A DNA stretch of 63,361 bases, filler included, from Hyphochytrium catenoides (Eukaryota > Protista > Hyphochytriomycota): NCBI GenBank assembly GCA_900088475.1. It is 7 parts of 7 records of this genome, joined end to end, with 100 filler letters (N's around TTAATTAATTAA, not from the genome) between each part and the next. Parts side by side here need not be neighbours in the genome. Positions count along the whole stretch, not along the records: positions 32,176 to 50,593 come from FLMG01000060.1; 6 more parts are not named here. One strand, written 5' to 3'. This document shows positions 9,761 to 51,257 of this stretch, one piece after another. The notes beneath the pieces were generated by a model. It worked only from the letters and a program-made list of their open reading frames with translations, was not told the origin of the DNA and made no database searches. The first letter of the stretch is position 1, and each line of letters opens with the position of its first letter. Both the position numbers and the translations under genes were made by a program.

Positions 9761-10977
9761 AGGAAATAACTATGATATAATCCTGATAGTCTTGCCTCCT
9801 AGGGCAATCCTCGTCGTTGTTGTTGGCAGCAGTCAAAGGTCGTCGATTGTAATATGGCCGATGATGAACAGAGAAAATTTCTAGGTCCTTCAATTTAACT
9901 CTCCAGAATCTCACCTTCCTTGGAGTTGAAAAAGGCATTCTCAGCACGAGGATGATGGCCCTACTACAATTCAACATCATGAAGACAATTCACTATTATT
10001 ATGGAATCAAAAGACGGAGGCAGGCTGCTGCTGTGGAGGAGGAGGATAGGATTGTCTAGTAGATAGTATCTCGCGGTTCTGCTTTCTACCTTTAAAATTA
10101 GGAGATGGACTTTATAATAGTAGAAACATCTGTCCTCTACTGAGGATGAGGATGATGAGGATGGTCAGATGGTGGGGCTTCAGTGAAGTGGTACCTTCAA
10201 TCCTTAGCAACAGACCCTGTGTTATTCAAGTGATCGCTGTTGAGTGCTGCTACAATGTTAGTTGTGAGGAGTGCAGTAGTCATTCTGTACACACCTAGCT
10301 CTCATCAGGAACATAGACGTTACGGTTCACCTGGGGTATGGGAAAGAGAGGTGTGAAGAGAAGAATCATTAATTGGAAGAATCCCATGAACTCTTTCTTG
10401 TGAACGCCGGAGCACCAGGAGGGAGAGATGATGAGGGACAATGGGACGAGCAAGGATCTTGAGAGCAGACCCGACCGACCTCATGAGTCAGTCATTCAGA
10501 GAAATCTCAATCATTTATCCCTACCCCGCCCAATTTCCTTGTTATCGTTTTTTCATCTTCTAGACTGTGCTCATACAACAGAAGCTTCCACCCAGCTCTA
10601 TAAAAAACTTCATCAGGTTATGTTTGGTCCACACTCGCTCTTGGTCGTGACTGTTGCTTCTCATCTCCTCACTTGAGCTGCTAGAGTGACGATTATGGTG
10701 GCGCATCAAAAAAGGAAGGGGGAGTAGTGAGGTGATACAATGCTCATTGTCAGTACAGTAGTACTTTTCTACTTTTATTTACTTACTAGTTGGGGAAGCC
10801 TAATAATTGGAGTACTTGAACTACTGCTAGACTTTATGCAGGTAACATAGACTACTTACCACTTCTGTCTACTACTACTACTGAAGACCTCCTGCAACAG
10901 CACCTGGAAGCTGACCCAGGACCACATTCTCGATGTGCGCAGGACCAGCAGAACATTTATGAGACAATCCTCATCTC

Positions 10978-13030: not shown

Positions 13031-13208
13031 ACTTTGGTTCACCGCTTCAGACCTCGTCTCAAGTGCGTGACTCTGTACTTCATCTCTTTGATGTACTCTA
13101 CGAGGACGACAGCTCTCTTCCCACCAAACAGGCTCCTCACGGGGATTCTGATCCGCAAACCTACCGAGTGCCTTCCCCTACGGAAACCCTCGCCAATCAT
13201 CCCGGTAA

Positions 13209-13455
13209 TGTTAGATTATATGCGATGATTGGACAATGTCATTAGATGAGAGTGCTCTACTTATAAGCCCAGCTGGGGTCCCATAATCTAGAGCTATCTG
13301 ACTATGCCAGCTACTCCTAATAAACCCTAAGATATTCAGTCATAGAGAAATCCCTGTCTAGAACAATCAGTCCTGAAGGTATTCCGGGGTACTGACCATA
13401 AGCCATAGATATAAACAGGGACATTTCGTTTGCTTCATATTTCGGATTCTACTGG
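13209..13455 (-). mobile_element. Partial LTR of copia family B
   Basis: Closely similar to 32627-32875 and 35524-35719 (ggacaatgtcattagatgagagtgctctacttataagccc...gatataaacagggacatttc). Confidence 0.8.
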
Positions 13456-14386
13456 CCGCTTACGGCAATCCTCTTCCATTGAAACTTTCGGAAATACTTC
13501 ATCGAGAACTTTGAGGAAACATTCGAAACATTGAAAAGCTTCATCCAATGTCATTAGATGAAAGTGCTCTACTTATCAATAGCTTTAGGGTAGTTTCCAT
13601 CGAGACTTTTTTTGGTAGCACGAGGTAGCATGCTACCAAATTGAGTTGGCTACATGCTACCAAATTGAGTTGGTAACGTCAATAATGTAGCATGCTACCA
13701 CAAAAAAATGTATCACGGTATCACATACCACAGCATGCGGACATTTGGGAATGACGATACTTTCCATGAAATATAGCAATTATTTCGTATCTTTCGCTTC
13801 AGCCTTGTAGGTCTCTAAATAAATGTCAGGCTCACATACCCCAAGCTTCTTCCGCCTTGGCACCAAATATTATGCGAGAGCAGGTGCTTCTGTCCTCTAG
13901 TTCGCCAGTGGTGCTTTTTGCCATCTCTTTGAAAGGAGGTTCGCAGTCAAGAAGGTTGTGAAGCAGAAAAAGACCATGAAGGCAAGCCAGAAAAAGAGGA
14001 GGCCATAGGCGGCATCATTAGAAGGTGAAGAGCTTTTCCTTCCTCTTGCCCTCATCTTCCTTTCTCTCCTCACAGCGCCCTTAAATCCAAGAGAAACAAG
14101 CGACTGCCCTTAGATGGCCCCGAAGAGGAGAACAGAGAGTCTGAAGGCGAGATTAGCCTACCTCAGGACCATCCTTTCACCTTTAAGCCTGTGTTTGGAA
14201 GCTGCTTTGCGAGGAGACCACCTTCTCCGAAGCACCACAAGACAGCAATAGCTGGTGAGGTAGCAGATTCAGTTCAAATGAGCAATGCTGGTTGAATTAA
14301 TGGCCTCCAGGAACCTACACGCCTCGTCAAGTCTCTGAAGCTNNNNNNNNNNNNNNNNNNNNNNNNNNNNNNNNNNNNNNNNNNNN

Positions 14387-32175: not shown

Positions 32176-32219
32176 CAACCATCCGTCCTACCATCTCGTC
32201 CTACCGATAAGACTAACCC
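32176..32219. mobile_element. Orphan terminal inverted repeat of the PIF/Harbinger-like element
   Basis: caaccatccgtcctacc...ccgataagactaaccc matches the TIR at 38662-38705 and is followed by TCA (TNA-type target). Confidence 0.6.
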
Positions 32220-32612
32220 TCAGCGATGCCGATCTACCCCCTGTCACTCTTTGAAAGCTCCGAAAAGAGGTGATTTTGGGCCGAAATCGTGCCTGAAACT
32301 TTCCCTTTAAAAAGTGCTCGTATGGTTGAAATTTTCGGTGGCGGGGTTGAAATGTATACTGAAATTTTGGATGTAACTTTCAATGTTTCGAACGTTCCTT
32401 CGACGTGGAAATATTTCCGAAAGTTTCAATGGGACAGGATTGCCGTTAGCGGCTATATGACCGTACCGGTGAGACCCGGTAGCCGTTATTGCCCAGTGGA
32501 GCTCGTTGGCTGCTCCAGGGGGGCCGACTTGATCTTGGTCTCGATCGGGATCGCAATAGTCCAATGGTTGGCTCAGAGGCCTCAAGACAGGTTTCCGAGT
32601 CCTGAGGGACGC

Positions 32613-32947
32613 GTGGGACCATAACCTGTTGGATTATATGGGATGTTGGACAATGTCATTAGATGAGAGTGCTCTACTTATAAGCCCAACTGGGGTCCCA
32701 TAATCTAGAGCTATTCTGACTATGCAAACTATTCCTAATAAACCCTAAGATATGGAGTTATAGAGATATCCCTGTCTAGAATAGTCAGTCCTGGAGGTAT
32801 CCTGGGGTACTGACCATAAGCCATAGATATAAACAGGGACATTTCCTTTACTTCATATCTCGGCTTGTACTGGGAGTTTAGAGCTGAAATTTGGGTAGTT
32901 AAGCTTGCCAGCTTGTAGTCCACATAGCTGTGCCCGCAGACTCCAAC
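32613..32947 (-). mobile_element. Copia family B 5' LTR (~320 bp) plus half-tRNA-iMet-type PBS
   Basis: Minus strand GTTGGAGTCTG...ATAATCCAACA is followed directly by GGTTATGGTCCCAC (32613-32626), complementary to the tRNA-iMet anticodon region as in Drosophila copia/Ty5-type elements. Confidence 0.8.
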
Positions 32948-32949
32948 TC

Positions 32950-33388
32950 TTCCCCTCTGCGTCGTCCGCTGTACACGTTTTGGTTTCAGCGTCGATCACA
33001 GTCCAACACTCCCCCGGAATCTAGAGAACTCTGTGAGCTCTAGATTCAAATGGAACTGTGATGGTCATCCGTGGTCACAGAACCGAATGGCTCACTATAT
33101 TGCCCGAGTTAAATCGCTCGGAGCGTACACCATGTTAGATTTTATCATTTGGTGGTGAGCACTTTGAACTAATATTGGCGGGTGTCTGGATATACCGGAG
33201 AAAGGTTTTGTACGCTCCGGTATTCGAACCCAGGACCTCTGTCTTTGATGCCGACACCCTAACCAGTATGCACCATACACCAAACGTACACTTGACTAAT
33301 CTCCGTTTTTGTTTATATACCAGGGGTTTTCCCCTCTGCGTCGTCCGCTGTACATTTTTTGGTTTCAGCGTCGATCACAGTCCCGACA
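32950..33388 (-). mobile_element. TRIM family A, copy 1 (5' LTR 33133-33388, PBS 33119-33132, PPT, 3' LTR starting 33008 and truncated by LTR-B)
   Basis: LTR TG...TCTAACA, PBS TGGTGTACGCTCCG, ~124-bp non-coding interior ending in PPT CCGGGGGAG, then a repeat of the LTR start TGTTGGACTGTGATCGACGCTG. Confidence 0.85.
33209..33289 (-). ncRNA. tRNA-like module in the TRIM-A LTR (copy 1)
   Basis: Acceptor stem GTACGTT/AGCGTAC plus discriminator A, A-box-like TGGTGTATGG, T-loop/B-box GGTTCGAAT, and TATATAAA ~30 bp upstream. The anticodon arm is non-canonical. Confidence 0.7.
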
Positions 33389-34887
33389 CAATCAACAAAC
33401 TGGTTCCATTTGTGGCTGATGAGCTTTTGTCGCTGCTGGAAGGACAACCATCAGCCTACGCGGGTGGATAAAAGTGCAGGAGCATTTGGACGGATGAGAA
33501 GGGGACAACGTTCTCAAACGTCTGCAGGAGATCACCAACTCAAGGTTTGATGCTGACGATCCCATTTCCCTGAGGTCGCACTTGACTATGCTAAGGCAGC
33601 GAACAGATGCCTTGAAAGTCACCTTCGAGAGGAGAAAGGAGAACCAGCAAGTTATTTACGAAACTATCCTGATCTCTTCCATCCTACAAAGCCTGCCGGC
33701 GTCCTTCGACTCCATAGTGAGTCATCTGCAGTATGTCCTAGAAACTTCCTCTCTGGCTGCAGACGAGGTCATCGACCGGATTTTGGCCGATGAACAGAGA
33801 AGAGTGTCTAGCTCTTCTCACTCACCAGAGCTTCCACCTTCTTCTTCGGAGCTGAATGCACTCGCTGCAAGAGAAAGTGAACGAGAGAAAAGCGCAGCGA
33901 CGACAACAACAACCTGCTTGTGGTGGCAGACAGTGCGGTATCTGCCGGAAAAGGGGGCACAATAGCGCAGACTGCTTCGATCCAGAGAAGAATGCTGTGC
34001 GCAGGCCATCAGGCTGGAAGCCTCGCAGGCCTTGTCTGCTGCTCTCCTATCCTCCACTTCTTCTTCTCCCGGAGGGGTTCAAACTAATATATTGGTGGTA
34101 TTAGCCAATCAGTATGCAAGATCTTCTGCCAACTCTGGTGAATCTCTTACCCTAGCTTCTATCCAGCAAGCTGCAGCGAAGGCGAAAGAAGTCCAGTGCA
34201 GCCATAAATGGCTGCTAGACAGCGGATGCTCCAGCCACATTACTGGAGATCGATTACTCTTTTTTTCTTTCACTCCTATTGACCCTCTTCCTCTTTTACC
34301 GCTGACAACCGGCCAGTTTTGCCTTGGGAAAGTGAAGCATACTTCCCTGCCGCCAATAGAGCTACCACTCCTCTCTACCTGCCTAATGTGCTCTATGCCA
34401 GCCCAATAGATCCAAGAATCCTCTTCTGGTGAAGCAGTGTTATTTACCTCAATGGAGCTTACACTCTAAGTCATTCTTCACTAATCAAGGACATTGCAAA
34501 GTTAACCTCTCAAGAACAAGTGAGACGTATTGGTTTGACCAATGGAACCGTTTGTTCTCCTCGGACACTGGCGATGCACGGGGACAAAGTGACTCTTCTC
34601 CTCCAAGACTAGCCGCAGCTACGAGCAAGCAAGAGCCTATCACCCTGTGGCACAAACGGGTTAATCATCTTAATCATACAGATATATGAAGACTAACTGT
34701 ACAGGCTTCGGGTATAGCTCTTGATAGAGCTTGTCAGCAGGCGTGCCTCTGTGAGACCTGCATCCTAGCCAAGCTACTAAAACGTAAGCCTTACCACGCT
34801 CAGCCTCGCAAGACAACAAGACTGCTTGAACTTCTGCACGCTGACGTCGGCATTGTCAATACTCGTAGCTACCAAGCCCGCTATGTA

Positions 34888-35287
34888 TAGCGTCGATCAC
34901 AGTTCAACACTCCCCCGGAATCTAGAGAACTCTGTAAGCTCTAGATTCAAATGGAACTGTGATGGTCATCCGTGGTCACAGAACCGAATGGCTCACTATA
35001 TTGCCCGAGTTAAATCGCTCGGAGCGTACACCATGTTAGATTTTATCATTGGATGGTGAGCACTTTGAATTAATATTTGGGGGTGTCTGGATATACCGGA
35101 GAAAAGTTTTGTACGCTCCGGGATTCGAACCCAGGACCTCTGTCTTTGATGCCGACACCCTAACCAGTATGCACCATACACCAAACGTACTCTTGACTAA
35201 TCTCCGTTCTTGTTATATACCAGGGTTTTTCCCCTCTGCGTCGTCCGCTGTACACTTTTTGGTTTCAGCGTCGATCACAGTTCAACA
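34888..35287 (-). mobile_element. TRIM family A, copy 2 (5' LTR 35034-35287, PBS 35020-35033, 3' LTR internally deleted), 5-bp TSD ATGTA
   Basis: Same architecture as copy 1. ATGTA at 34883-34887 and 35288-35292; copia integrase coding remnants continue on both sides. Confidence 0.85.
35110..35190 (-). ncRNA. tRNA-like module in the TRIM-A LTR (copy 2, best preserved)
   Basis: GTACGTT-TG-GTGTATGGTGCATAC-...-AGGTC-CTGGG-TTCGAAT-CCCGG-AGCGTAC-A, with a fully paired T-stem, TATATAA at about -29 and TTTT starting 5 nt downstream (35102-35105). Confidence 0.75.
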
Positions 35288-35719
35288 ATGTATAATTTCT
35301 ACTCGTTGTAGATGATCACTCGCGGAGGTGCGTTTGTACAATTTCTTAGAAGAAAGCAGAGGCAGAAAGGAAGCTGGAGGAGCTAATTCTCCTTTATGGA
35401 GAAACAGACGGGTGAGCGCGTGAAGGAGATACGCTCCGGTCGCAGGGAAGAGTTCGTTAGCAGTGCTGTCCGCGGAGTGTGCTCTCGCCGAGGGATCCTG
35501 TACTCTACTACCCCTGCTTATTCTGTTATTTTATATGGGATGATTGGACAATGTCATTAGATGAGAGGACTCTCTCTACTTATTATAAGCCCAACTGGTG
35601 TCACATAATCTAGAGCTATTCTGACTATGCCAATTATTCCTAATAGAGCCTAAAATAATCAGTCATAGAGATATCTCTGCCTAGAACAGTCAGTCTTGAA
35701 GGTATTCCGGAGTACTGAC

Positions 35720-36583
35720 TGTTGAACTGTGATTAACGCTGAAACCAAAGAGTGTACAGCGGACGACGCAGAGAGGAGAACCTCTAGTATATAAACAAAA
35801 CGGAGATTAGTCAAAGTGTACGTTTGGTGTATGGTGCATACTGGCTAGGGTGTCGGCATCAAAGACAGAGGTCCTGGATTCGAATACCGGAGCGTACAAA
35901 ACCTTTCTCCGGTAGATCCTCCAGACACCCCCCCAATATCAAATGAAGTGCTCACCATCCACTGATAAACTCTAACATGGTGTACGCCTCCGAGCGATTT
36001 AACTCGGGCAATAGATTGAGCCATTCGGTTCTGTGACCACGGATGACCATCACAGTTCCATTTGAATCTAGCCTTACAGAGTTCTCTAGATTCCGGGAGT
36101 GTTGAACTGTGATCAACGCTGAAACCAAAGAGTGTACAGCGGACGACGCAGAGCGGAAAAGCCCTGGTATATAAACAAAACGGAGATTAGTCAAAGTGTA
36201 CGATTGGTGTATGGCGCATACTGGTTAGGGTGTCGGCATCAAAGACAGAGGTCCTGGGTTCGAATTAAAAACGCTTGGCGCTGATAACAATATTCTCCAC
36301 ACTTCTACCTAGCGCTGAAGCAATCAGACAATGTGCAATTTTCTGGAGATCTCGACGCGTTTATCAAAGAGGCTAAAGGAAACAACATCTCGCCACCAAC
36401 CTCGCTCTTCATCGTACATCGAGAAATCTATGCAATGTAAGCCCAAGAACCAAGTAATCTCGTTCTAGCGGGTCTTCTACAGCATGCGGGGAGGTGTTGA
36501 ATGTTCATCTTCGACCCTCCTTCACAATGGGGAGTTCGAGCTGCGGGGAGGTGTTGGAGTCTGAGGGCACGGAGACTCCAACA
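35720..36583 (+). mobile_element. TRIM family A, copy 3, chimeric (LTR 35720-35977, PBS from 35978, PPT, second LTR 36100-36265, then foreign copia-type 3' sequence), TSD CTGAC
   Basis: TGTTGAAC start, TCTAACA end, then TGGTGTACGC(C)TCCG. CTGAC at 35715-35719 and 36584-36588. Confidence 0.85.
35818..35898 (+). ncRNA. tRNA-like module in the TRIM-A LTR (copy 3); a truncated fourth copy lies at 36198-36265
   Basis: Same 81-nt module; TATATAAA at 35788-35795, exactly 30 bp upstream of G1. Confidence 0.7.
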
Positions 36584-36949
36584 CTGACCATAGGCCATAG
36601 ATATAAACAGGGCCATTCCGCTTGATTCATATCTCGGCTTCTACTGAGAGTTTGGAGCTGAAACTTGAGTAGTTAAGCTTGGCACCTTGTAGTCCACATA
36701 GCTGTGCCCTCAGACTCCAACATATTCACCCTCTAGCAACAAATGCTGTGAACGCTGGATGAGGACTGTCATTCAGCAGGCGGCGATATGCCTTCTGGTT
36801 GCTACTGACCTTCCTCGTTTGTTTGGGCACATGCATTGGCGTTTACAAGGGAAGAGTGGCGTTTACAAGGAAGAGTTGATACAATTCGAGCTAGGTGTGT
36901 ATAGAGAGTGATTACTGCACTACTGACAACGAGCATTTCAACATTATTC

Positions 36950-39147
36950 AACGGTTTGAGGGAACGGCTATGCGGACTGCAAGCTGGCAAGCTTAGCTAC
37001 CCAAGTTCCAGCTCCAAACTTCTAGTAGAAGCCGAGATATGAATCAAACGAAGTGACCTTTTTTATATCTATGGCCTTATCGTAAAGGCCCCCAAATACC
37101 TTCAGGACTGAGTGAGGGTTAGTCTTATCGGGGGGACGAGTTGGTAGGACGACCAGGGTCGTTAGCGGCTCAATCCAACCGAGAAGTGAGGGCTTCGACA
37201 AGACTCGCAATTTACCTGCTGGCGGTCGGACTGAGGGACGCAAAGCCTCAATTTCAACCCACAGGGGCTTCAGCACAAATGGACTTTTTCGTGTTTTGTG
37301 TGTCTGTGTGTGTGTGTGTTTGTGATCAAAATTTCACTATTTGGATTTTCACTAATCACTATTTGGGCTTTTTCTTTGGGTTTAAATCTGGGTACTTTGG
37401 GGATATAAAAGAGGTTAGACTAGAAGCGAAAGGGTTTCTATGAATATAACTCGAATTTGTAACGCGAGACGTATTACCATAACCGAGACACATCGCGTGC
37501 GTCCACGCGAATTTGTGCTGTAACCTCATATTACCTGAGACGTATCACCTACAATCCTGCGTCGTTAGCTGTACGAGTTGAGGGTGGGGGTGACATGTCA
37601 CGCAACTCCTGCAGCAGTCGAGAGTTGGAGAAAGTTTCGCCACTCACTCACTCACTCACTCACACTCACTCACTACTCGGTTGTAGGAAGCGTGGGTGAA
37701 GGAGTAGAGAGATCCTTCAGAGAGTGTGCCTATCTAGGAATTACTACGAGTACTGAAAGAACTAGTTCTCAGTTCTACAGGTTGTAGTTCTATAAGGAAT
37801 GAAGAGCTCCTGGTGTTACAAGTACAAGTACAACTAGATCAGTGATCCAAGCATCTTCCACTGATAATGCAGCCGAAGGCTGGATTACGCACTAGTAACA
37901 TCGGGCGAGCCCTAGGCGCAGCCTAAAGCTATTGATAACCAGAAACGAAGAGCAGCCCCTTGCAATAGTAGTAAGATGATGCCAGCAGCAACTAGCAAAT
38001 AAAGCGCAGAAGAAGAATTGTTTTCGGCAATTCGGATCCTTCCGAGTGACGGGAAGAAAGAGAGCTGGCAATTCGGCTTCCTTTGTTAGTCTGGTGGCTT
38101 GTTGTGTCCACTTCTTGGAAGAGGACAGAGGAGATGATGAGGAGAGCAGCGACAGCGGCCATCTGCTTTCTTGGCTCTTTTAATCAGTTAAAAAGAGAGA
38201 AAGAACCGGCGCATCAACACTGGGATTCCATTACAGTCTCTTGCCGCGATCAAAGAACAGAAGAAAGAGGAGGGTTCGTTGCTCTCTTCATTCATCTTTG
38301 AACAACCGCCCCAGTTAACTTTTGCAGTGCGCAGGAGGAGGAACGCGCCGCCCTCTTCTGCCGTACTGTTGATAGTCGGAAGAAAGAAAATCTCTTTACT
38401 CTGCACCTTTTCCTCTTCCTTTTTTAGAGGAGTGCAAGAAGAGATCGACACAAAGCCAAAAAAGTAAGTTGGTCCATCTACAATTCTTACAATCCCCCGA
38501 TTATTATTGCTTTCTGAAGCCCTTGAAGCTCGTCTCAACTTCCTCAACGGAAATTTTTGAAGCGAAGGTAATATTTTATTCATAATCGTCCTTGCAATAC
38601 CTCCCGTCCTAGCAAAATCTCCGTCCTACCGTCCAGCCAAAAATTTCACTTTCCCACGATCCAACCATCCGTCCTACCACCTCCTCCCCCCGATAAGACT
38701 TACCCTGACTGTTTTAGACAAGGGACATCACAATGACTGAATATCTTAGGATTTATTGGGAATATTTGGCAGGGTCAGATTAGCTTTAGATTGTGGGACC
38801 GCCGTTGGATGCTTCACTCAAGGGAGTTGGAGTGGCGGCAGGTGCTGAAGTCTGAGGGCCTATTTCTATGGGGTGCAAGCTGGCAAGCTTAGCTACCCAA
38901 GTCCTAGCTCCAAACTCTCAGTAATAGCCGAGACATGAGAACAATTCGATTTTTGGGGCCTGTTTGTTTCTACCGCTTAGGGTCAGGACCCCGGGTTAAC
39001 TTCAAAACTGACTGTTCAAAATATAAACATCTCTATGACAACCGACTGAGTATCTTCTTAGGTTCGATCATGGTTCAATATGAATAGGTGACATAGTAGT
39101 CAGAATAGGTCTAATTTGGAGAATCCCAGTAGTTTAGCTTACCAACA
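36950..39147 (+). mobile_element. Two further diverged LTR-B copies (~36950-37115 + 38706-38810, split by the Harbinger-like element; and ~38843-39147)
   Basis: Shared core caagctggcaagcttagctacccaag...agccgaga(t/c)atga...cttca(g/a)(g/a)actga; the second copy is preceded by a purine tract. Confidence 0.65.
37116..38705. mobile_element. Non-autonomous PIF/Harbinger-like DNA transposon (~1.59 kb)
   Basis: ~36-bp imperfect TIRs GGGT(T/A)AGTCTTATCGGGGGGA(C/G)GAG(T/G)TGGTAGGACG, TGA on both sides (37113-37115, 38706-38708), and the flanking LTR-B resumes on each side. No transposase ORF. Confidence 0.75.
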
Positions 39148-39224
39148 CCTCCCTGCAGCTCGAACTCCCTTCCATCCCGGCAGCTGGAACTCCGTTGAGC
39201 GGTCGAGGGTGAACCTTCAACATA

Positions 39225-39471
39225 AGGTAGTAGACAAAGATGATCTTTGACAAGCCGGGAATCGAACCAGGTCCTTCCTTCAGCAATGCCAGCACGCTAC
39301 GGCGTCTGCATCAATACACCAGGTGGCTGTTATTTAGTGATTTAGTGGGTCCTTATAGCCGTCTTCCTTCTGTGGTTTTAGCCGTGACCACCCCGGACCA
39401 GGAGCATACGCATTTAGAATGTGATGCGGACTAAGTTGAGCCTTACATTAGCCAATGTACAGATTCCAACA
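39225..39471 (-). mobile_element. Second tRNA-like-module LTR (family C), truncated
   Basis: Minus strand begins TGTTGGAATCT at 39471, with CTATAAG ~25 bp before TGGTGTATTGATGCAGAC...TAGCGTGCTGGCAT...GGTTCGATTCCCGG (39248-39331), similar to the family A module. Confidence 0.5.
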
Positions 39472-40117
39472 ACACTGACGACTCATATTATGTAAGACTC
39501 CAGATGAGTTGTCATTCACGGGCTAGATTCACAGTCATACCACCGTCGATCTCTTGTTGTGCTTTGTGTCGGTGAAGGGGAAGATCGTCGGTTGGTCGAA
39601 AACGGACGGGTATTCGCCACATAATCACACTAATAATAGAGGGTGCTCTGCAAAGAGATATGGGTCTAGCATTATTTTCGAAGTGGTGATTTCTTTATCG
39701 TGTCAGCCTCTTGAACGGGAGACCTGTGAGCGGCTAACTGGGTAAGATGTCGTGGTGTATTAGTATGTTATAAAACTCTGTTCGGGCTGATGTAATGAGA
39801 CGAAGAGGGTGGTCGTCGTCATCATCGTACAATAAAAAATAGGTCATTATGATACAATATAATGGTGGGATTCGGCAGGGGATGATGGCCCTTCTTCCTA
39901 AGAGTGGTGGAGGAGGACCTGCTGCTCAGGCCCTCCATCTGCTACAGTAGTCTCGCCCCATCCCTGTTGTTGCTTGCCGCCGCTTGATCTTCGAAAAGTA
40001 TTACATTGACAATTGCGGCGTCCTCTCTACTTCTGCAGTGGGCTTGGCTATTGTTGAATCGACCTCCTACTTTCAGATGCCTGGTAACTCAAATCAGCTC
40101 TTCCTGCTTTGATATTC

Positions 40118-41470
40118 TTACTCCACCAAAAGATTACGGAGACAGGCGTACAGAGGAATGAGAAAAATCGGCACTGCGTTTGATGGTGTCCAGTAAGCAG
40201 GCCGCATGGTTGACGCTAGTGAAGAGCTGGCAGTGGGTGATGTATTTCCAAGAATTTGGCTGTAAGCGCCGGGAGGATACACGCCCGGTAGATACACGAG
40301 GTAGCTCTTCTGAAAGTAGTCGTAGCTGTACGCTTGGTAGCTGCGTTGCATCTTGACAGTCATATTCGGTCCGGGAGAATTCAGAAAATCAGTAACCCCA
40401 GTCCAGATCATGATGCCCAAGGCGCTCTTGGCAGTGACAGTGGAGAGGTAGTCCCTATTGTCTTGGGCTGTGGGTCCCACTTCTGGCATAAAAGAGCATG
40501 AGGGTCCGATGCACGTCCCAATAGCAATGCGAGCAGGATGGACTCCCATTGCAACAAGACGGTCAAAGCTCTGCGGCACAGAGTCATAGTTCGCTCTCAT
40601 TCCCATATTGTAGGCCATCCAAAATACCATGTCAATCGCAGGCATCACGGCCATGAATGTGGGCTGATAGGGGCTCCAGCTCTCCTGTATTGTTGAGAAT
40701 GCAGACCACGAGATACATTTTCCTTGGCCGGACAGGGCAGCGCGGGTAGCACTGACGAAGCTGGCGGCAACGGAGGGATTTTGAGTCTGGTCGCTTTCGC
40801 TGTTCAGGCATTCATAATCAAAATCAACTCCGTCAAAGCCGAACTCCTGCACGTAACCACGCAGAGCACTTGCAAAAGCTACCGCTCTGCCCTGTAGCTT
40901 GGGACCGAACATGAAGTCACCGAACAGGCCAGCGCCGCAGTTACTAGCCCCGCCGACGGAAAGGAAGACTTTGGAACCCTTGGCGTGGAACATGTCAACG
41001 CCCTGACGCAGGGCTCTTCTGTCATTAAGGTAGGAGGCCGCGGGGTCAGCAGGTAGTCCTGAGCTATTGATCTGGGAAAAGGAAAAGAGTGCGATTTTGG
41101 GAAAATTCGGATAGTCAAAGAGCGAGACGTTGCCTAACTGCCAGGACTCGTAGTAGGCGACGATCAGCGGCAGATCAGAAGAACTCAATCCGCATTGAAA
41201 GCTGCCAGAAAAAGTGGCGAGGGAGGGTGCGGCGGGTGAGGCCGGGGAAGGCGAACCCCGCCCTTCCGTGCCCTCCCTGGTTGATCCCAACCCTACATCC
41301 GTTTGTTCCTGGAGCTGCTGACCCGTTGCAGGCATCATAATGATGGACGGAAGGAGGAGGACCAGTAGGGCAATATAAAAGTAGGCAAGGAAGCTCAAGA
41401 CGCGGAGAGGTCTCGTAGGAGGCAGCAGGCAGTCGAAGAAGAACGACGACGCCATAAGCCCGGAACACAT
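40118..41470 (-). CDS. GH18 chitinase, single exon, N-terminal signal/anchor and possible GPI-type C-terminus
   Basis: Catalytic FDGVDFDYE (DxxDxDxE), KVFLSVGG, WMAYN and GIMIW motifs. Hydrophobic VLSFLAYFYIALLVLLLPSII near the N-terminus; Ser/Thr-rich spacer plus hydrophobic C-terminal tail. First ATG at 41470. Confidence 0.88.
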   Translation of the reverse strand: MCSGLMASSFFFDCLLPPTRPLRVLSFLAYFYIALLVLLLPSIIMMPATGQQLQEQTDVGLGSTREGTEGRGSPSPASPAAPSLATFSGSFQCGLSSSDLPLIVAYYESWQLGNVSLFDYPNFPKIALFSFSQINSSGLPADPAASYLNDRRALRQGVDMFHAKGSKVFLSVGGASNCGAGLFGDFMFGPKLQGRAVAFASALRGYVQEFGFDGVDFDYECLNSESDQTQNPSVAASFVSATRAALSGQGKCISWSAFSTIQESWSPYQPTFMAVMPAIDMVFWMAYNMGMRANYDSVPQSFDRLVAMGVHPARIAIGTCIGPSCSFMPEVGPTAQDNRDYLSTVTAKSALGIMIWTGVTDFLNSPGPNMTVKMQRSYQAYSYDYFQKSYLVYLPGVYPPGAYSQILGNTSPTASSSLASTMRPAYWTPSNAVPIFLIPLYACLRNLLVE

Positions 41471-42568
41471 GGTTCTCTGTTTGCTACTCAAGAGGGACGA
41501 CACTAGTCCGAGCAAGGACTGCAGAGATCCAGCACTAAGACAGCAGCAGAGGACAGAATGAGATGTATGTTTAACTCCGGATAGGACCCTCAGACCTAAG
41601 CTACTTTTGCGCGGGGAAGAGGACTGATGGGTATCGAATAGATTGCAGACTGTGGCCACGGCAAAAGGAGTACTAAGCGCCTTACAAGGGAAAAGGAGGC
41701 GTGAAGCTGCATCGTCGTTCTAAAATCTTCACTTTTAAGCACCTACGCTGGACTCCAACATCCTCCTCTTCCTCTAACTAATAGCGCCAGCAGCGCCTTC
41801 CCACTCTTTCATTGTCCAACATTCTTCTTCTTCCTCCTCTTCCTATATCACTCTTCACTGCCCACCCACCGCCGCCCGTCATGTGGTGGGATCGTGTTGC
41901 TTTGCGCAGTGTCAGAGACCTTTGCTAACGGCGGCTGGCGGTGGCGGCCGCTGTGCTCTCTCCTCTGTGCTCTCTCAACCTCCACGCACAGCCCCGGCGG
42001 CCGTTGAAGGAAAGAATGGTTTGCAAGAAGCGAGAAAGAAAGGTGGGGAGGAGAGGACTTGGGAGAGGACTAGCGCTGGGGCCTGGCCGCCAAGGAAACA
42101 AAGGCTGGTCATCTAGTAAATAACACAAGGATGGGCGAGGCGAAGGAGAGCCGTTACCCGTCAAGTAAGTAGCCCTTCTTTCTTTCATTATTGATGACTG
42201 TAAGAATGCGCTCAGGAGCCTAAATGGCGATTTGGAAAAATTGATCAAGCACATTTCTTAGGTCTTGGCGAAGGTTTCATCGAAGATTCGAGGTTTATCC
42301 GTCCTGTGAGTTTATTAGTGAAACCTAAAATGCTTTCACTTTTCACTTCGAAACATTCACTTTCGTTGCTGCTTTAATATCCTTTGTACGGTGAGGCCTT
42401 AGAGTGCCTCGACCGCTGTCTGAATGACGGGCCTGAGCACTCCTGTCCTAACGCTGAGCGGAACAAGGGGCTTGGAGAAGGCGGCGAGGGAGCGGCCCGG
42501 AGCGGTGAGCGCGAGGTCTTCAGACTCATTTCTGGGACTCGGGCCCGCTTAGGAAGGAAGAGAGGAAG

Positions 42569-45500
42569 ATGACATCTCTGGCAGCAGAGACGGGGAGAGG
42601 GCGAGGGGGAGGAGTGATGCAGAAAGGCCAAGGGCGCCCAATAAACGCAAGCAGGGAGATCGGCAAAAGGGGAAGAAGAGGAAGAAGAAACTTCCGTCGT
42701 CAGTTGAAGAGATTGAGCACTACAGCTTTCGGCTTCCACTCACTGTCTCCCGCCGCCTTTCTTCCATCCCTTGTGCGTCCCAAAGAGTGGCAGTCCATGG
42801 TGCTTCAGCTCTTCCTTCTTCAACATGCTCCCGGTTCATCATCCTCTTTCCCTACCGGGTCCTCCTCTATTATTGTCCATCAGGATCCCACTTCTTGTTG
42901 ATTGCTTGTGCTGCTGGAAGAGGGCTACAGATTGTACTCTATAGGCAAGGGACCCTGTCTACCTCTGTGCTTAATGAGAGCTTTCAATTTCCTATGTGCG
43001 TGCGTTGTGACGTCAAGGGTACCTGCCCCTTCCGCCCACCCTCCCGTCCACTAGCCTTTTACGATCGTCCCTTTTTATATCACCATAAAGCTGCGCACTC
43101 AGCCTGGGCGGTCGCCTTCTACGTCTTCCTCGTGCTCATGTGCCCACGAAGAACCCCGCGTCCCACTTTTCAAAAGCTAACTTACGCTGCACATCTTACC
43201 GCTTCCTTTGCATATGGAGTACTCAAAGCTCTGGGAGTCGACAATGTCCTCCTATCCTGTCTCCAGCATAGCTTGCCAATGCTCGCAAACTCTGAAGCTG
43301 ATCGTATAGTTTTGACATTGATGCTTCCAGAGCTACTTTCGTCCCAGCCGCTTTAGTCCTCCTATTCTCTTCGCTCAGCGTTCCAAATGCATGAGTTCCC
43401 GTCAGCCCTGGCGCTCCGGGGGCTCGTGGTCTACGCGACCAATCCCCCGGGCTTCACCACCGTCCCCACCCCAGCCATAGGATCTGGTGGAACCTTTCCT
43501 CCTCCGCTGTTGCCGCTCACTCCCAGTAAGTACTAGCGCTCTTCTTTCTCTCTCTTTCTTGTGTGTCTCGCCGTTGCTCTGCTTAGGGGCGGGTTTGGCC
43601 TCCCGACAATTGGTCTTACGCTCTCACTCTCTTGTCTTAAGACAACCTCACCATAGTGCCATTCTTGGGTCCTCCCATGCGATTAGTGCGTTTATGCCTA
43701 GGTTTCCCCATCTCGCTCCTACGCCCTTTCCTCTTCTTCTTCTTCCACATTCGGCAGCTGTATCAGCAAGGTCGGACGATGTGTCACTGAGTTGTTTCTT
43801 CGTACACTTTCCTCGTTCCCACCTCAGGCCAAGAGAGTTATTCTCTGTATGACTGGGTCCTCACCTCTCTCATTGCGCTCCTGTTCTTTCTGGCCTTGGT
43901 GCATGCGCTGTGCAAGTTCGCTCTTAATCTCTACGTCATGGCGCTCGTCACTGTCCGGTCTGACAGCTGCCGCTCTGTCATCTCGCTCGTGCTTCTTTGC
44001 CTGTATGTGCCGTACACTTTGTTCGTCAACTACATCATGATTGACACCATAAACTGGGACGCGCTTCTACATCTCGATATCCCTCTTGCCTTTTCTCATT
44101 CTCTCTTCTCTCATCCTTGGAGAGTCTTTCTTCTTCCTGAGCTCTGTCTCCTCACCCTCCTCGGACTTGCACAAGTCCTCATAGCGCTCTGGGCCTGGGC
44201 GTCTGCGCCGTCAGAGAAAATGGTAATGAGGGAGATCCTCAATCAGCCTGTTCTGCCTGATGTGACAGTCGTGATGCCGATCTACAATGAGCCACTCCCT
44301 TCTCTCATGGCCGCTGTCAACAGCGTGGTAGCCTCTCTATACGCCAAAGAGACAGAGGGCAAACAGAAAAGGGGGAAGGTTGACCTCATTTTAGCTTTTG
44401 ACGAAGGGGAGATGACACCACTCTACCTCTCGACGCTGTACTGTTTCCTCCACTATGGCGATCCCCAGCGTAAGCCCCTCTCGTCTCTTGCTATGCAGGA
44501 CTACATGGGGATTGAGATGAACATCCAAAACCTTCAGCGCGCCGATCCCCTGCTCAAAGGGAGGAGCTTCTCCTCCATCCTTCCGCTGAAATATCAAGGA
44601 ATGGCCGTTACTCTTTGCCGCTTTCCGCACGGAGGGAAGCGCCACGCGCAACATTGTGCCTTCAGCCTTCTTCAGAACAGATGGGAACCGAAGGGACAGG
44701 CTCGAGAGGCGAGAGGCAACGAAAGACCTGGAGAAGACGAAGAACAGACGGGTAGTAAGCCTCTCCTTCTCTTTATCGACTCGGATATTGTCCTTCATCC
44801 CTCCGCAATGCACTTGCTAGTTTGGGACTTCATCAAGCCACTTCCAAACCGTCAGGCGCGTCCATGGGGAGTCACTGGACTGATTGTCTGTAAGACGAAG
44901 GGACAGTGCAGCATATTGGCAGCTCTGCAGGACGCAGAGTACATCGAGGGCCAGGTGTTTATCCGACAAATGGAGCATTGCCTTGGCTTCGTATCCTGCC
45001 TGCCCGGTGCCCTCACAATGATGACCTATGAGGCCCTCGAGGCAGTGCAGAAGGAGTACTTCTGCCCTCCAGAGCAGGGCAGAAGAAAGAAATCGACCGG
45101 TAAAGACAGAGGTAGCAGCGCTTACGACTTTGCTCGCACTCACTTGGGCGAGGACAGATATCTGACGCATCTCTTCATGGAGAAGAGCGGACGAAGGGGG
45201 ACAACAGCTTACCAAGCAGCGGCGCGATGCGAGACCGAGGGAGTCACTTCCCTCTTCGCCCTCATGAAGCAACGCCGCCGCTGGCTGCTGGGAGGTATCA
45301 CAAATGATATCTCGATGTATACGGATCCTCACCTTTGGAAGGCCTTCTACGTCCCTCTGTCTGTCGCACTAGTCAGGCAGTTTACAGGCCCTCCCATTCT
45401 TTGCTTCTACATCCTCTTCGCAGAGCTCGCGGTGGGAGAGATCTCCGCGGTCTGGTGGCTGTTACCCATGCTGGCAGTGCTCTGCCTCTCCTTCCTCTTC

Positions 45501-46211
45501 CTCACCGTGCACACAGCGAGGATTGGACACAAGCGGATCGTGCTCTTCTACCCTCTGCTCCGCCTCCTTCTCCCCCTCTTCTCTTTGTGCTTTGAAGTCT
45601 ACACTCTCTGTACCTTTGGCAAGCAGACCTGGGGAGGGCCGAGGGTCGGAGGAGAAGCGAAAGGAGCGCCACCAGGGAAGGAAGAACCCGGATTCCCTCC
45701 TGCTTCATCAGCTGACCCAGTCTCATTCTCATATTTTGGGAGCTTCACGTTGGCCAGTGAAAGGTCAAGGCGTTGTTTTAGGGGAGAAGGAGATAGGAAT
45801 ACGTTTCTTGGAGAATCTCTCTCTCGCTCTCTCTTCCAGTCCTCTCCCATCACTACTCCTCCTGCTGCCGTCTCGAGCCCGGTGTCCTCTCTGTATCAGA
45901 AAGAGCTACGAATAGGTTCTCCCTCCTGTGCGCGTACTCTCTCCTCCCAGCAGCACAGCATCAGACAGGATCCTTTGCTTTCTGAACAAGGAAGGAGAGA
46001 GATCACGCCGTCCTTTCTCTTTCTCTCTTCACCTGAGAGCCCCGCGACCTCAAGCCGGCAAGTCGACGAGGATAGAGTGCAAATAATGCTGGAGAGCGGG
46101 GGAGGAAGCAACACTGGAAGAGGTAGCTATCACCGTGTAGAGACGCCGAAGTCTAGCTGCATCCCCTCTCTTCCGGCTCGCTCAACTATTACTGCTAATA
46201 ACATAGTATAA
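42569..46211 (+). CDS. CHS: Chitin synthase (GT2), ChsD/class VI (division 3)-like; large final exon 43828-46211, upstream exons (e.g. 43379-43526) tentative
   Basis: VVMPIYNE, RFPHGGKRHAQ, LFIDSD, LQDAEY, SCLPGALT, HLGEDRYLTHLFM and KQRRRWLLGGITND, followed by TM helices and TWGGPR. Motif order and wording match my recollection of the fungal ChsD type. Confidence 0.88.
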
Positions 46212-47321
46212 GAGTGTCCGCATTGACATTGACTGGGCATTTGGGCATCTGGCGAGCGCGAGGCCCCTCTTCCGCCTGTTTAGGTTAGCAGGTAGATCGC
46301 TAGGGAAAGTCGTAGTGCGCCTCTATTGCCCATTATGATCTACTATATTTTTTTTTTCTTTCTGCCTCTGGCTCTCTATTCTGTCGCCAGGAGCGACTAA
46401 ATTAACTGCGTTCCTCCCGGGCATCGGACGCTGCAGCTAGCCTTGTGCTAATGATTGGGTTGTTATTAGAGAGGAAGAAGGAGATGAGCCACTGACGGTC
46501 CTGGCAGCAATGGCAGCGAGCACCAGTTGGAGCTCCGTCTAACAGGCTCATCCGCTCTCTCCTCCTCCCAACCCTGCACTAGCCGGTCCGTTACTTCTCA
46601 TAACCCTGAGGACAGCGCCCTCCTGTCACTCCCTCTCCCGTCTCCCCCACCTTCCTCCTCCCTCCCTCCCGCGCCTGCTGCTGCGCCGCCTCTGTCCCAC
46701 GCTGCCGGCTGCTCTTCCCCTCTTCCTCTTCCTCCTCTGTCTCTGCGTCTCTCTCTCTCCTGTGCTCGGGGGATGACCAACTAGAGGAACATTAAGCTGC
46801 AAGCGACCCCTTTGGACAGAGCAGAGCCATAAGATGTAGGGCTTACAGGTGAGGCTGACCCGCATATTCAGGCCCTAACCTCACCCTTCAAGAAGACCAG
46901 ATTTTCAAATTTCGGCGGGTAACGGACACTTCGGCCGCCTCTCTGCCCTGTCCCCGCCCCCTCTCCATAACTCACACACGCATATCTTATCCCCAAATAT
47001 TTTCTCTCACACTTGACCGTAGCCTAATCATCATGCTTTACCCGCCCTCTGTCTCGCAACCGGCTGCCATCTTCCTCACACATTCCTCCCTCTGTCTCAA
47101 TGGGTAGTCGCTCTGTCTCCGCTGCTCTTCCTCCCTCTCCCTCTCCCTCTCCCGCCTTTCGCCGACAATGCGAAAATTTGCCGATGAATCTGCGTTGAAG
47201 CGCCGTCTTCAGTATCTGCAAGAGCTTCACGTCAGCACCTGCAGGATATCACTCCTCAGGAAACCCCGCACACCAGCTAGCTCTGCCGGTAAGGCCCCTA
47301 AAGGAACAGTGAAAAGAAAAG

Positions 47322-49163
47322 ATGGCGTCCGCACAGTCCATAGTTTCGGCAGACGTGGACAAGCTAACTGGCATTATGGACAACACGCGCGCGGAGCTGG
47401 ACCGCTGGATTGCAGGGCAAAAGGACGCCATCGACAAAAAAGAAGCAGCACACTTCTCAGCCTTAAGAGGGCTGGCAGGTAAGAGAAGAAGCAAGTTGGA
47501 GGTACAGAGAAGAGGGGTATGACGGGCATAGAAAGAGTTTGAAGTCTGGCAATGGACGAGAGTCGCGAAGACTGGAGAGGGAGATAGAAGAGATAATCTA
47601 ATGTTCTCGCACATGATTGGCAGAGCGGCTTCGGACGCTGCGGCAGCAGGAACAGGACGCCACCAGTCGGCGGACTGTCCTTGAAGAACGTAAGGGCCAG
47701 TAGCCTATCTTATTGCCTTTCCCTAGTCAACTGCCGATCATCCTCCTCAGCACTATCTTGCACCGTCCCGTCCAGCTGCCACTAGTGGTGTCTGTCTACT
47801 CACAAACCAGGATCACCTGACGTCTTCATAACTTTCTCTCCTCCTACGTCGTCTCCCTATGGCCAGGACGACAGGCTCAGGAGAAAGAGCTAGCGGCCGC
47901 AAATGCGCAAGTAGCGGCGCTGCAGGTACAATGGAGTGGCTCTTCTCTACGGCCCTTATGCTAGAACTCTAACGTTGTCTTCGTGCTTTGCCACTAGCTC
48001 GAGGCTGACTCTCGGCTGCCCAAGCTGCGATCTCTTGAACAGCAGAAGGCAGATGAGCAGGAGAAGGTAGCGGCTTTGATGCAAGGTATGCGGGAGGAAC
48101 ATACTGAACACCAGGGAAACAGGGAGCGAAAGGCAGGAAGACACAGCGAACGAGAGGAGGTGGTGCTTGAGCTTTTTAACTTTAAGCTCTGTGCCCGCGC
48201 TTTTGGTTCTCGCCTCTCTTGTCCTTAGACCCTTGTCCCTCTTAGCTAGCGGCCCCTACAGGCGATGCTCTCTTCTTAGTTCCTCTCTGTTGGGCCCTCG
48301 CTCACCCCAGCCGGCCCTACTCCACGTCCTTCTCTATCAGCTCTGAGTGCCACGCAGTCGGCTGTAGAATTTGAGTCGGAGCAGCTGCAGAGAAGCTTGA
48401 GCCTGTACAAGCTTCTCGGCCTGGAGTTTGAACGGATCACTGGTGAGAACGCAGCGATCGCCCCATTTTCTTTTAGCCGGCTACTCTCCCTCTCTCTCTT
48501 ATCATCGCATACACTCTGGCCTGTCTCCCTCTTCGTGATGCTTCTCCCTGCTCTCCAAGTGATCTGTTACCTGCCCCGCTGACCGAAAAAGTACGGCTTA
48601 GAAAGGCTCTCTGGCGTGGGGCTTGCCACAGGTTCCTCATCTTCCTCTAATCTGTTCTCTCCCTTCTTACAAGCAGAGAGCCGCCTCCGTGTGACGTTCA
48701 CCAAGCTGGATCCTACCGCCCCAGCCAGAGCTTTCCATTTCTCTGTCAGGATCGATGCCTCAGACAAATATGAAGGTCCTAAAGCCCGTCCTATCTATTC
48801 TTTATATGCTGTTTAGTTTGGTTCTCACCTCTATGTCGGCTTTAGCTGGACTGTCTTTCTCTCTTTCTTTTTTCTGTTCTCACTCTCGTCGCAGCTCTCT
48901 CTCTCTCTGCAGCTGTTCTCCTTTCAGGAGTCACTTCTTGTGTCCTTGTTTGCTATCGCTCGTAAGTTGCCTTCGTCCCTCATTTTCTCTTCCTTTTTTT
49001 CTAACCCTCTCTCTATCCTCGTCTATCTTTAGTGACGGAGTGTGTGCCACATCTCGCCGTTCTCCCTGCGCTGCTGGAGGAGCTTAACCGCACGAATAAC
49101 TTCTCTCTCTTCGTGCGGACAATGCGCCAGCAATTTAAGGCTCTCCTTGCCAACGGGAGGTAG
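47322..49163 (+). CDS. SPC25: Kinetochore NDC80-complex subunit SPC25, about 7 exons
   Basis: N-terminal coiled-coil exons, then LYKLLGLEFERI / RLRVTFTKLDPTAPARAFHFSVRID..KYE / VTECVPHL..LLEELNRTNNFSLFVRTMRQQF (Spc25 RWD domain); GT-AG introns. Confidence 0.85.
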
Positions 49164-51257
49164 AGAGAGAGAGGAGCACAGAAACGTGCGCTGCCTGAAA
49201 AACTCGCGAGTGAAAATAAGAGAAGGAGAGAGAAACAAGGGAGAGAAGGAAGAGAGAAAGAGAGCATGGGAGTTCAAAAGGCCGACCAGAGAAGGACAGA
49301 CGGAGAGGAATACGCATTTTATGGGATCTCGCTGGGTAGCGGAGTAGTGAAGTGACAGTTGAGTTAGAGAGTGGCGCTGGTGAAGGCCTTAATAGGTCCT
49401 TCAGGCGCGCCAGGCAAGTGTATAATGAGCCCGTTGCAGGGCTAACAGTGTTTTGACTGCAATGATCAGCCCTAAGAAACCGAAAGTCTATTAAGAACAT
49501 GTCGCAAACAAGAAGAGGAAGAATGTCCAGCCCGAGGAGGAGGAGAGGACACGCTGTCGAGACAGAGAGCACAAGAAGTAAGGAAAGTGATCATCCGATG
49601 GGCAACGTCACGCTTCTCTCCTCTCGGGCCCCTAGGCAGTAGCTCCCTTCCCATTAAGCTTCTCGATCTCCCACAAGGGACAAAGGGCTCGCACCAAGCC
49701 CCAGCGGTCAGAAGCCCCAAGAAGGCCGGACTCCTAGTGAAGAGCCAGCTCCGTGACGACCTTTCCCTCAGCCTTCCAAGGGCGGCAGTGCCGTGGGCAG
49801 GAGAGATGTCTCTTCTGAGCCCGAAGATTTCCCAGTGAGCCCTGCGCTTGGTCCCCCATCTGTGTCAGGAAGTGCTACTATATGAAGTGATCATAATTTC
49901 TCTTTTGCTTTGCTTTGCTTTGCTGTGTCATTTATGTTCATAAGTGACAGGATGTGAAGTTAGGTTGCGAGGCTAGCATTATCTTGGACCATATCAGCTT
50001 GTAATTTACAGTCAGTGTGGAAAAGGGCTTACGAGAGGTGAAATAAGGTTGAAATACGCGGCTTGCTGTTCGTGGCTGGGGTTCTGGGGCCCCAACCAGC
50101 TTGAGAACACTTCATTAGCGAGAGAGAGAGAGAGAGANNNNNNNNNNNNNNNNNNNNNNNNNNGAGCAGAGAGAGAGAGAGCAGAGAGAGAGAGAGAGAG
50201 AGAGAGAGAAGGGAAGCGCACCAGCGGAGGAGAGAAATGTAAACTTCTTAGTTCTACTAGGACCGAGATCTGTCATTGCCAGTGCCTCTCAAGCCTGTTG
50301 CTGCTCAGCCCCAGACCGTCTGCCCTAGGCCAACCTGGGATATAGCTCTGATAGAGTCCTTATCCCTGCACCGCGCCCTGACACTTCTCACAGTGTCTGC
50401 TAACTCCACCCTCTAGAGGTACCGCTGCTGGCTGTCAGGCGCAGTGGCAGCCTCCCGCTCCTTCCTCACAGCATTATTTCCATCCTCCATCCTCTCTGAG
50501 TTAACACTGCGACTTCTCGTCACCAGCGACAAAGGCGGACCGGACCACCTAGGTTACATTCTCTGCTAGCCTTACCCGCTGTCTTCTTTCGCTNNNNNNN
50601 NNNNNNNNNNNNNNNNNNNNNNNNNNNNNNNNNNNNNTTAATTAATTAANNNNNNNNNNNNNNNNNNNNNNNNNNNNNNNNNNNNNNNNNNNNCTTGCTC
50701 TTGATCTGTACATCTGTCGTCTCTCCTCTCGCTCTCTCTCGCCTCAACTCTCTCTCTCTCTCCGTTCTTCTCTCTTCTTCCTCTTTCTGGTGGATGGCGC
50801 AAGCCTCAAGGAAAGAGAAGAGACGACAGCTTCAGACGATCTTTCCGTCATTGCGAATTCTGATGCAGAGAGACTGACTTGGGCCGTAGGAAGATAGTGA
50901 CTCCTCATCAACGGAAGCAGTGCCGTGCCGTCTCTTCACTTACATTATCCTCATCTAGAAGTCGTTGGTCTCTCTTCTACTCTTCTCTCTATCTACTTCT
51001 ACCTCCAGCTGCTCATTGTGTTAGCTGGCTATGGTGTTCTTTGGCATGGTTTCCTGACCTTATTGTCAGCAGACGTGGTCTCTTCTCTTCTTCAAGAGAC
51101 ATCGGAGGTCCTTGACCGATCGATCTCCCTTTCGATCTGGCTTTCGCGCCTCCCGCGCTTGGCACCTCCCTCTTTCTTTTTCGTTAGAGCGTCAGGAGCG
51201 GTGTAATGGGGCTGCCTCTCTCTTCTTCCCCGCCTTTCGCTGTACAATGACCGCACA

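Follow-up and report, generated by a model that had tools for sequence, protein, structure and literature searches.

Divergent chitin synthase-like and GH18 chitinase-like genes beside Spc25 in a contig of the Hyphochytrium catenoides assembly

The window considered here is a stretch of 63,361 nucleotides (nt), filler included, joined from seven parts of the Hyphochytrium catenoides assembly GCA_900088475.1; the piece analysed spans positions 32176-50593 (~18 kb of genomic sequence, record FLMG01000060.1), and all positions are counted along the whole window. At its centre lie a chitinase-like gene of glycoside hydrolase family 18 (GH18) on the minus strand and a putative chitin synthase gene on the plus strand, which diverge from each other with 2236 bp between their open reading frames (ORFs) and 1916 bp between their likely ATGs (41470 and 43387). 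Both distances fit the 1.1-2.4 kb given in a preliminary description of this DNA, which had also placed the two divergent genes beside an intron-rich SPC25; a Spc25 gene with six introns does lie downstream of the synthase. Public sequencing that holds the locus comprises three DNA runs (X1-X3) from one study and two samples, taken in 2011 and 2017. The features of the pair are the following.

40118-41470, minus strand: GH18 chitinase-like gene, a single exon of 450 amino acids (aa) from the first ATG (ORF, Pfam, AlphaFold)
40139-40177, minus strand: weakly hydrophobic C-terminal tail of the GH18 protein past a Ser-rich stretch (hydropathy 1.54), candidate glycosylphosphatidylinositol (GPI) signal
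40397-40414, minus strand: GH18 motif IMIWTG with the conserved Trp
40607-40621, minus strand: GH18 motif WMAYN with the conserved Tyr
40811-40837, minus strand: GH18 catalytic motif FDGVDFDYE (DxxDxDxE), its D, D, D and E conserved in the GH18 alignment
40949-40963, minus strand: GH18 motif LSVGG (SxGG)
41336-41392, minus strand: N-terminal hydrophobic segment of the GH18 protein, predicted to act as a signal peptide or as a type II anchor (19 residues with a Kyte-Doolittle mean of 2.45)
41471-43386, no strand: non-coding spacer between the start codons, candidate bidirectional promoter region, with no Pfam domain in its ORFs
43387-43525, plus strand: predicted exon 1 of the synthase, ATG and 46 codons, no homology, with a TAG stop upstream in frame at 43354
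43526-43827, plus strand: predicted synthase intron, GT-AG, CT-rich, 302 nt, phase 1 (donor GTAAGT at 43526, acceptor CAG at 43827)
43828-46211, plus strand: main exon of the synthase, with three N-terminal and at least three C-terminal membrane helices, then a disordered Ser/Pro tail of ~190 aa
44772-44789, plus strand: synthase motif FIDSDI
44925-44942, plus strand: synthase motif LQDAEY
45144-45167, plus strand: synthase motif LGEDRYLT
45267-45284, plus strand: synthase motif KQRRRW
45624-45644, plus strand: synthase gating-loop motif QTWGGPR

The synthase ORF (43896-46211, plus strand, 771 codons) matches the Pfam family Chitin_synth_2 (PF03142) at 2e-15, solved chitin synthases are also matched by profile search, and homologues reach E 5e-109. 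In an alignment of 62 family members 42 columns do not vary, and the window synthase preserves every one of them, including PIYNE, FD, RFPHGGKR, DSD, QDAEY, GEDR and KQRRRW, and the catalytic signatures of a processive family 2 glycosyltransferase (GT2) chitin synthase (DxD, QxxEY, (E)DR and Q(R/Q)xRW) are all present. With the GH18 motifs in place as well, the catalytic machinery on both sides of the spacer is intact; the preliminary description had called the GH18 catalytically intact and both catalytic regions uninterrupted. QDAEY was found in one copy, with no systematic look for a second copy of the duplicated QXXXY that is said to define the recCHS group. Only GT2 and chitin-synthase Pfam families match the protein, and no myosin, cytochrome b5 or MIT domain accompanies them. 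The frame is open upstream of 43896, homology to relatives begins at ...YDWVLTSLIALLFF, and the genomic frame holds no in-frame ATG ahead of the conserved first membrane helix. Because relatives need a start ahead of that helix, we placed it in an upstream exon: splicing from the ATG at 43387 gives an in-frame model of 841 aa with 3+3 hydrophobic helices, which makes the CT-rich GT-AG intron suggested earlier for this position plausible. The predicted intron contains repeat-like loose ends as well as single-nucleotide polymorphisms (SNPs) and an indel of 3 nt. The spliced models, both this one and that of Spc25 (234 aa), were used for frame and hydropathy only, and searches and folds used the continuous genomic sequence. 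In the AlphaFold model of the synthase (predicted local distance difference test, pLDDT, 86.7; predicted template-modelling score, pTM, 0.88) a GT-A domain is joined to a membrane channel. It matches the Xenopus and Chlorella-virus hyaluronan synthases and the Phytophthora, yeast and Candida chitin synthases at E 5e-12 to 1e-10, with template-modelling (TM) scores of 0.42-0.51. The predicted fold thus shows a processive, channel-forming GT2 and leaves its product undecided.

The best matches to the synthase are two proteins on eukaryote-like metagenome contigs (P0001 and P0002, 48% and 45% identity), followed by Spongospora and Plasmodiophora (37%-41%) and then by chytrids and fungal ChsD/class VI/VII enzymes (30%-34%). 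In a maximum-likelihood tree (LG+C20, 33 rows) of this synthase group only, rooted on one distant viral sequence, the window synthase forms a clade with P0001 and P0002 (100/100) that is sister (100/100) to Phytomyxea (Plasmodiophora, Spongospora); chytrids come next outward, then Dikarya and Mortierella. By sequence, the enzyme is a member of the class VI / division 3 / recCHS group, its placement against classes I-V, animals and diatoms resting on the match list and not on the tree; the earlier label of a ChsD/class VI-like synthase is borne out by that list and by the tree with Phytomyxea. The name recCHS comes from Goncalves et al. 2016, where the N-terminal half of these proteins is described as hyaluronan-synthase-like (PMC5122149), and the plasmodiophorid "family 1" synthases are, according to Schwelm et al. 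2015 (PMC4471660), relatives of fungal class VI. The family-1 synthases of Plasmodiophora brassicae and Spongospora subterranea, the sister group, share their 37%-41% identity over 97% of the catalytic region and, like the window synthase, are free of accessory domains and encoded by an (almost) intron-free gene. They differ in that the window sequence sits on a separate branch with the two metagenomic proteins and has an N-terminal extension and the disordered tail. The fungal class VI/VII (ChsD) enzymes share the same invariants (RFPHGGKR, DSD, GEDR, QRRRW and TWGGPR among them), a single catalytic domain and a hyaluronan-synthase-like arrangement of membrane helices, but the window synthase falls outside the fungal clades.

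Two side observations concern these relatives. On one metagenomic eukaryote contig (L102, 807 kb), approximately five class VI-type synthase genes or fragments stand in tandem (2074-13892). A "chytrid" synthase with a polysaccharide deacetylase domain (PF01522), P0008 from Blyttiomyces sp. JEL0837, forms a long branch within the Phytomyxea clade, and for this placement transfer, contamination and artefact are all possible.

The GH18 reading frame (ORF 40118-41659, minus strand, 513 codons) is open up to a GTG at 41659, has its first ATG at 41470 and matches PF00704 at E 3e-11 (44 bits, cut-off 29.6). From that ATG onward, a hydrophobic segment of 19-23 residues is followed by a low-complexity linker, the barrel, a Ser-rich stretch and a weakly hydrophobic end. 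The membrane-tethered chitinase of the preliminary description is therefore possible, given this putative N-terminal anchor or signal and the weakly hydrophobic tail. Since 12 differences fall at 40166-40244 in runs X2/X3, so that the tail varies strongly between samples, we regard its role as a GPI signal as a possibility only. The AlphaFold model is a TIM barrel (pLDDT 80.5, pTM 0.82), and its best fold matches are solved single-domain bacterial GH18 chitinases without an insertion domain (Bacillus cereus ChiNCTU2, 3n11; Lactococcus, 3ian; Serratia ChiC, 4axn; Vibrio, 9ojl; TM 0.62-0.67). With these small bacterial enzymes it shares the barrel lacking the alpha+beta insertion, DxxDxDxE, SxGG and the conserved Tyr and Trp; it differs from them in its eukaryotic signal or anchor and its tail, and identity is 14%-19%. 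Chitinases hold places 1-36 of the fold ranking, with the first endo-N-acetylglucosaminidase at place 37, and the Pfam EndoS barrel scores 18 bits, below its cut-off of 27.

Relatives of the GH18 domain are few. A word-index protein search gave no match, and an exhaustive search of 1.84 billion representatives gave 94, four of them below 1e-10 (P0121, P0122, P0123 and P0124). P0121, 43% identical to the window GH18, is a secreted protein with a Cys-rich domain, found on a 2.6-kb contig of 51% guanine plus cytosine (GC) from a public run. P0122 (34% identity) is found on AT-rich contigs, one of which encodes a PolB with inteins; this PolB shares 68% identity with that of the giant-virus bin GVMAG-M-3300023184-29, a bin that also holds the GH18 of locus L008. 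The PolB beside P0122 (L004, 6770-11833) is 1687 aa long and has two intein regions. In the GH18 tree the window and P0121 (90/79) are sister to a clade from giant-virus contigs (100/97), and all seven sequences hold together at 95/84. Farther relatives include Tupanvirus and the Chlamydiae "chitinase D", and the best viral fold match of the model is a Tupanvirus protein (1.4e-14). Compared with the giant-virus enzymes (GVMAG-M-3300023184-29, Tupanvirus deep ocean), identity is 25%-34%, no synthase lies within 10 kb at the viral loci, and the window has host-like GC. Judged from its sequence, the window GH18 is nearly an orphan, very divergent yet intact.

Contigs of the three DNA runs cover 39600-45599 evenly, with no 200-nt bin left empty. 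Short overlapping contigs run from the GH18 gene through the spacer, and one 3.3-kb record extends from 42518 into the synthase; the physical linkage of the two genes is well supported, not proven. The summed assembly per run, 49-101 Mb, is a rough upper guide to genome size. Relative to the window, the older sample has at least 14 SNPs and several frameshifting indels in the spacer, where such indels between samples stand at 41994, 42581, 42651, 42665 and 42846. In the sample behind X2/X3 the GH18 catalytic domain (~830 nt) has one listed difference only, a second (41181) falling in the linker just upstream, and at least six of the ten listed synthase differences between samples are at third codon positions. 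Few changes in the GH18 domain and third-position changes in the synthase, set against a variable spacer, are the pattern expected of constrained genes. In all three runs there are also contigs that match up to 44112, 43539, 43559, 43746 or 41824 and then diverge into unrelated sequence; the break at 44112 falls inside the N-terminal membrane region of the synthase and could point to a second gene copy, to a divergent allele or to an insertion haplotype.

The reading to which we give somewhat better than even chances is that of two intact nuclear genes whose products build and trim a chitin-like layer and whose adjacency is specific to this lineage. The synthase would be a membrane-embedded processive GT2, made up of three N-terminal membrane helices, a GT-A domain in the cytosol, a bundle of C-terminal helices and a disordered tail, and most likely it would polymerise UDP-N-acetylglucosamine (UDP-GlcNAc) at the cytosolic face and push the chain out through its own channel. 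The GH18 protein, putatively a small single-domain endo-chitinase, would pass through the secretory pathway and may remain membrane-attached; at the same surface it would trim or remodel the polymer, or free oligomers, while a wall, cyst or spore is being formed. Together the two would most likely make and trim a chitin-like layer comparable to that of plasmodiophorid resting spores, and the pair probably serves such a wall or cyst. Chitin as the product, its location and timing, and the coupling of the two enzymes are what we infer from this arrangement. The common spacer of 1.9 kb would permit, without proving, common regulation. The synthase lineage would be an old eukaryotic one, common to Phytomyxea, and the GH18 lineage one that is common to giant viruses. 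In bacteria, BcsA/BcsZ, PgaC/PgaB and NodC/NodB each set a processive GT2 beside an enzyme that cuts or modifies its product, in co-transcribed operons with demonstrated functional coupling; the window, in contrast, has two divergent eukaryotic genes with a putative coupling. It has been reported that chloroviruses carry a chitin synthase as well as chitinases (PMC5408694).

Several observations weigh against this reading. Zero RNA runs for the organism are found among public runs, and zero records in the three DNA runs cover both genes at once. Chitin synthase activity is unproven for class VI/recCHS enzymes (PMC5122149), and the synthase fold matches hyaluronan and chitin synthases equally well. 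Endo H-type enzymes score about level with chitinases by GH18 sequence (E 3e-4), and the protein may act as an endo-N-acetylglucosaminidase. The synteny check called for in the preliminary description found the pairing in none of ~100 loci fetched around relatives of either gene (L001, L002 and L099-L102 for the synthase, L003-L096 for the GH18), nor was a locus with both genes found in IMG/VR; a GH18 stands near the synthase neither at the Plasmodiophora loci examined nor on the metagenomic contig with the five-synthase array. As no relative keeps the pairing, the adjacency may be without functional meaning. That the two are chance neighbours with unrelated roles, the GH18 digesting prey or fungal chitin or processing glycans while the synthase works elsewhere, is possible though clearly the less probable course: at 1.9 kb the spacer is nothing unusual, the distance to the next gene being 1.1 kb, and the GH18, which has no chitin-binding module, is similar to secreted bacterial and viral chitinases, but its long N-terminal hydrophobic segment and tail are better suited to an enzyme kept at the surface than to a digestive one that is freely secreted, and with few copies of each enzyme among ~10^4 genes we roughly estimate the prior probability of two chitin enzymes being adjacent by chance at less than ~1%. 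A further reading is that the synthase makes a GlcNAc-containing product other than chitin, either a hyaluronan-like polymer or short chito-oligosaccharides. Processive GT2s with their own channel, the Chlorella-virus and Xenopus hyaluronan synthases (PDB 7sp7 and 8smn; E ~5e-12, TM 0.45-0.51) are the top fold matches, level with chitin synthases; the gating-loop motif is TWGGPR and not WGTR; and class VI, the sole division 3 class, has been placed closest to hyaluronan synthases (PMC5122149; 2026 preprint, bioRxiv 10.64898/2026.02.21.705424). However, identity to those enzymes is ~15%, sequence profiles favour chitin synthase, no gene for UDP-glucuronic acid supply was noticed near the window synthase, the neighbour is a GH18, a cutter of GlcNAc-beta-1,4-GlcNAc linkages, and chitin is present in the resting spores of plasmodiophorids, which carry the same synthase family (PMC4471660). 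We therefore regard such a product as unlikely.

The origin of the pair bears on two further explanations. The preliminary description saw a horizontally acquired, co-regulated chitin module. Such a module would have arrived as one piece, with a giant virus or a chitinous donor as possible sources. There are 0 introns in the 1.35 kb of the GH18 gene and 1 in the 2.5 kb of the synthase (3.9 kb of coding sequence together), beside six in the 705 nt of Spc25 coding sequence; giant viruses carry the sister clade of the GH18; class VI synthases are patchy, and transfers of recCHS have been suspected into Plasmodiophora, Batrachochytrium and Mortierella (PMC5122149); and adjacency is improbable by chance, as estimated above. 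Against this, the nearest relatives differ (Phytomyxea-sister eukaryotes for the synthase, giant viruses for the GH18), the only viral contig with a synthase relative has it at 27% identity, no viral or eukaryotic locus among those fetched has both genes, and GC content at third codon positions (GC3) is 0.64 and 0.60 in the two genes and 0.61-0.73 in the Spc25 exons. The synthase genes of Plasmodiophora and of the metagenomic eukaryote contigs are also (nearly) intron-free, so a scarcity of introns appears to be a trait of the synthase family and not a sign of recent arrival. Given the different affinities, the lack of a shared locus and the Spc25-like GC3, joint transfer is not supported, and we consider it very unlikely. 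An endogenous giant-virus element was likewise rejected, as no viral hallmark gene (capsid, PolB, packaging ATPase) was found in the 22 ORFs scanned within 18 kb and the composition is host-like (GC 0.52-0.56 in the genic part of the window, 0.24-0.27 in the viral contigs). We conclude that the pairing arose within this lineage and is neither an inherited nor a transferred cassette; old, separate acquisitions of either gene are possible, given how few introns the pair has (0 and 1) compared with the six of Spc25. It is also conceivable, but improbable, that the contig belongs to another species, a chitinous protist or zoosporic fungus present as parasite, symbiont or contaminant, for whose genome the pair would be ordinary. 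The closest named synthase relatives are indeed plasmodiophorid parasites, then chytrids, and a database of 5.8 billion proteins contains none from this organism, which implies an unannotated, unvetted assembly. Yet all three runs, from two samples taken six years apart, contain the locus at even depth; Spc25 and the flanking repeats have a similar composition; and no known synthase exceeds 48% identity to this one, which speaks against a known contaminant. As to the host, the preliminary description had an alga/plant-like genome; a rhizarian or another protist, in which chitin would surprise less, is at least as likely. The synthase has close named relatives only in Rhizaria, the plasmodiophorids, which are routinely chitinous.

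If two intact genes for a chitin-like layer are indeed what the locus holds, it bears on the least understood of the chitin synthases, class VI / division 3, whose scattered distribution (some fungi, plasmodiophorids) has been read as ancient origin or transfer. The window synthase and its two metagenomic relatives would make a third deep branch, outside fungi and Phytomyxea; the adjoining GH18 gives a hint at the product of the synthase, and itself defines a very sparse clade common to eukaryotes and giant viruses. A more far-reaching proposal, which we think rather doubtful, is that a lineage without known chitin, possibly an alga, combined a division 3 synthase of phytomyxid type with a GH18 from a rare clade, one also present in giant viruses, into a chitin module of its own. 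Were this true and the genes co-expressed, genomic context would for the first time indicate that division 3 recCHS enzymes produce a polymer open to cleavage by GH18 enzymes, and the case would suggest virus-host traffic of chitinases beyond Chlorella. Should the host turn out to be a zoosporic fungus or a chitinous protist, there would be nothing unusual in the pair.

Within the spacer, an ORF at 42787-43356 (189 codons, in frame with predicted exon 1) was considered as coding and rejected, since it has no Pfam domain and a 1-nt insertion stands at 42846 in X1 and X2. The frame from 42787 to 43525 is open but for one TAG at 43354 and leads into the predicted exon 1; it is probably not coding. 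Two further features flank the pair.

47322-49163, plus strand: complete-looking Spc25 (kinetochore) gene, 234 aa in a model of seven exons, whose six GT-AG introns measure 72-257 nt
32678-36265, no strand: nested repeats of the left flank, a truncated Ty1/copia gag-protease-integrase fragment with pieces of a tRNA-like short interspersed nuclear element (SINE)

Spc25 matches Pfam PF08234 at 4e-6 on 48616-48816, and its six introns point to a eukaryotic host with dense spliceosomal introns. GC is 46%-48% in the repeat nest (32.2 to ~39.9 kb) and 52%-56% in the genic part from 40 kb onward. An N run at 50138-50163, between GA/CT microsatellites, is an assembly gap. Neither a search with the copia fragment nor an Rfam search gave a match. 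The copia-type gag/protease/pre-integrase fragment lies at 33.5-34.7 kb between 300-nt direct repeats (32988 and 34889) that are 97% alike, and the left flank also has several inverted copies of a tRNA-like (B-box) element and a degenerate tRNA at 35110-35190 (ARAGORN).

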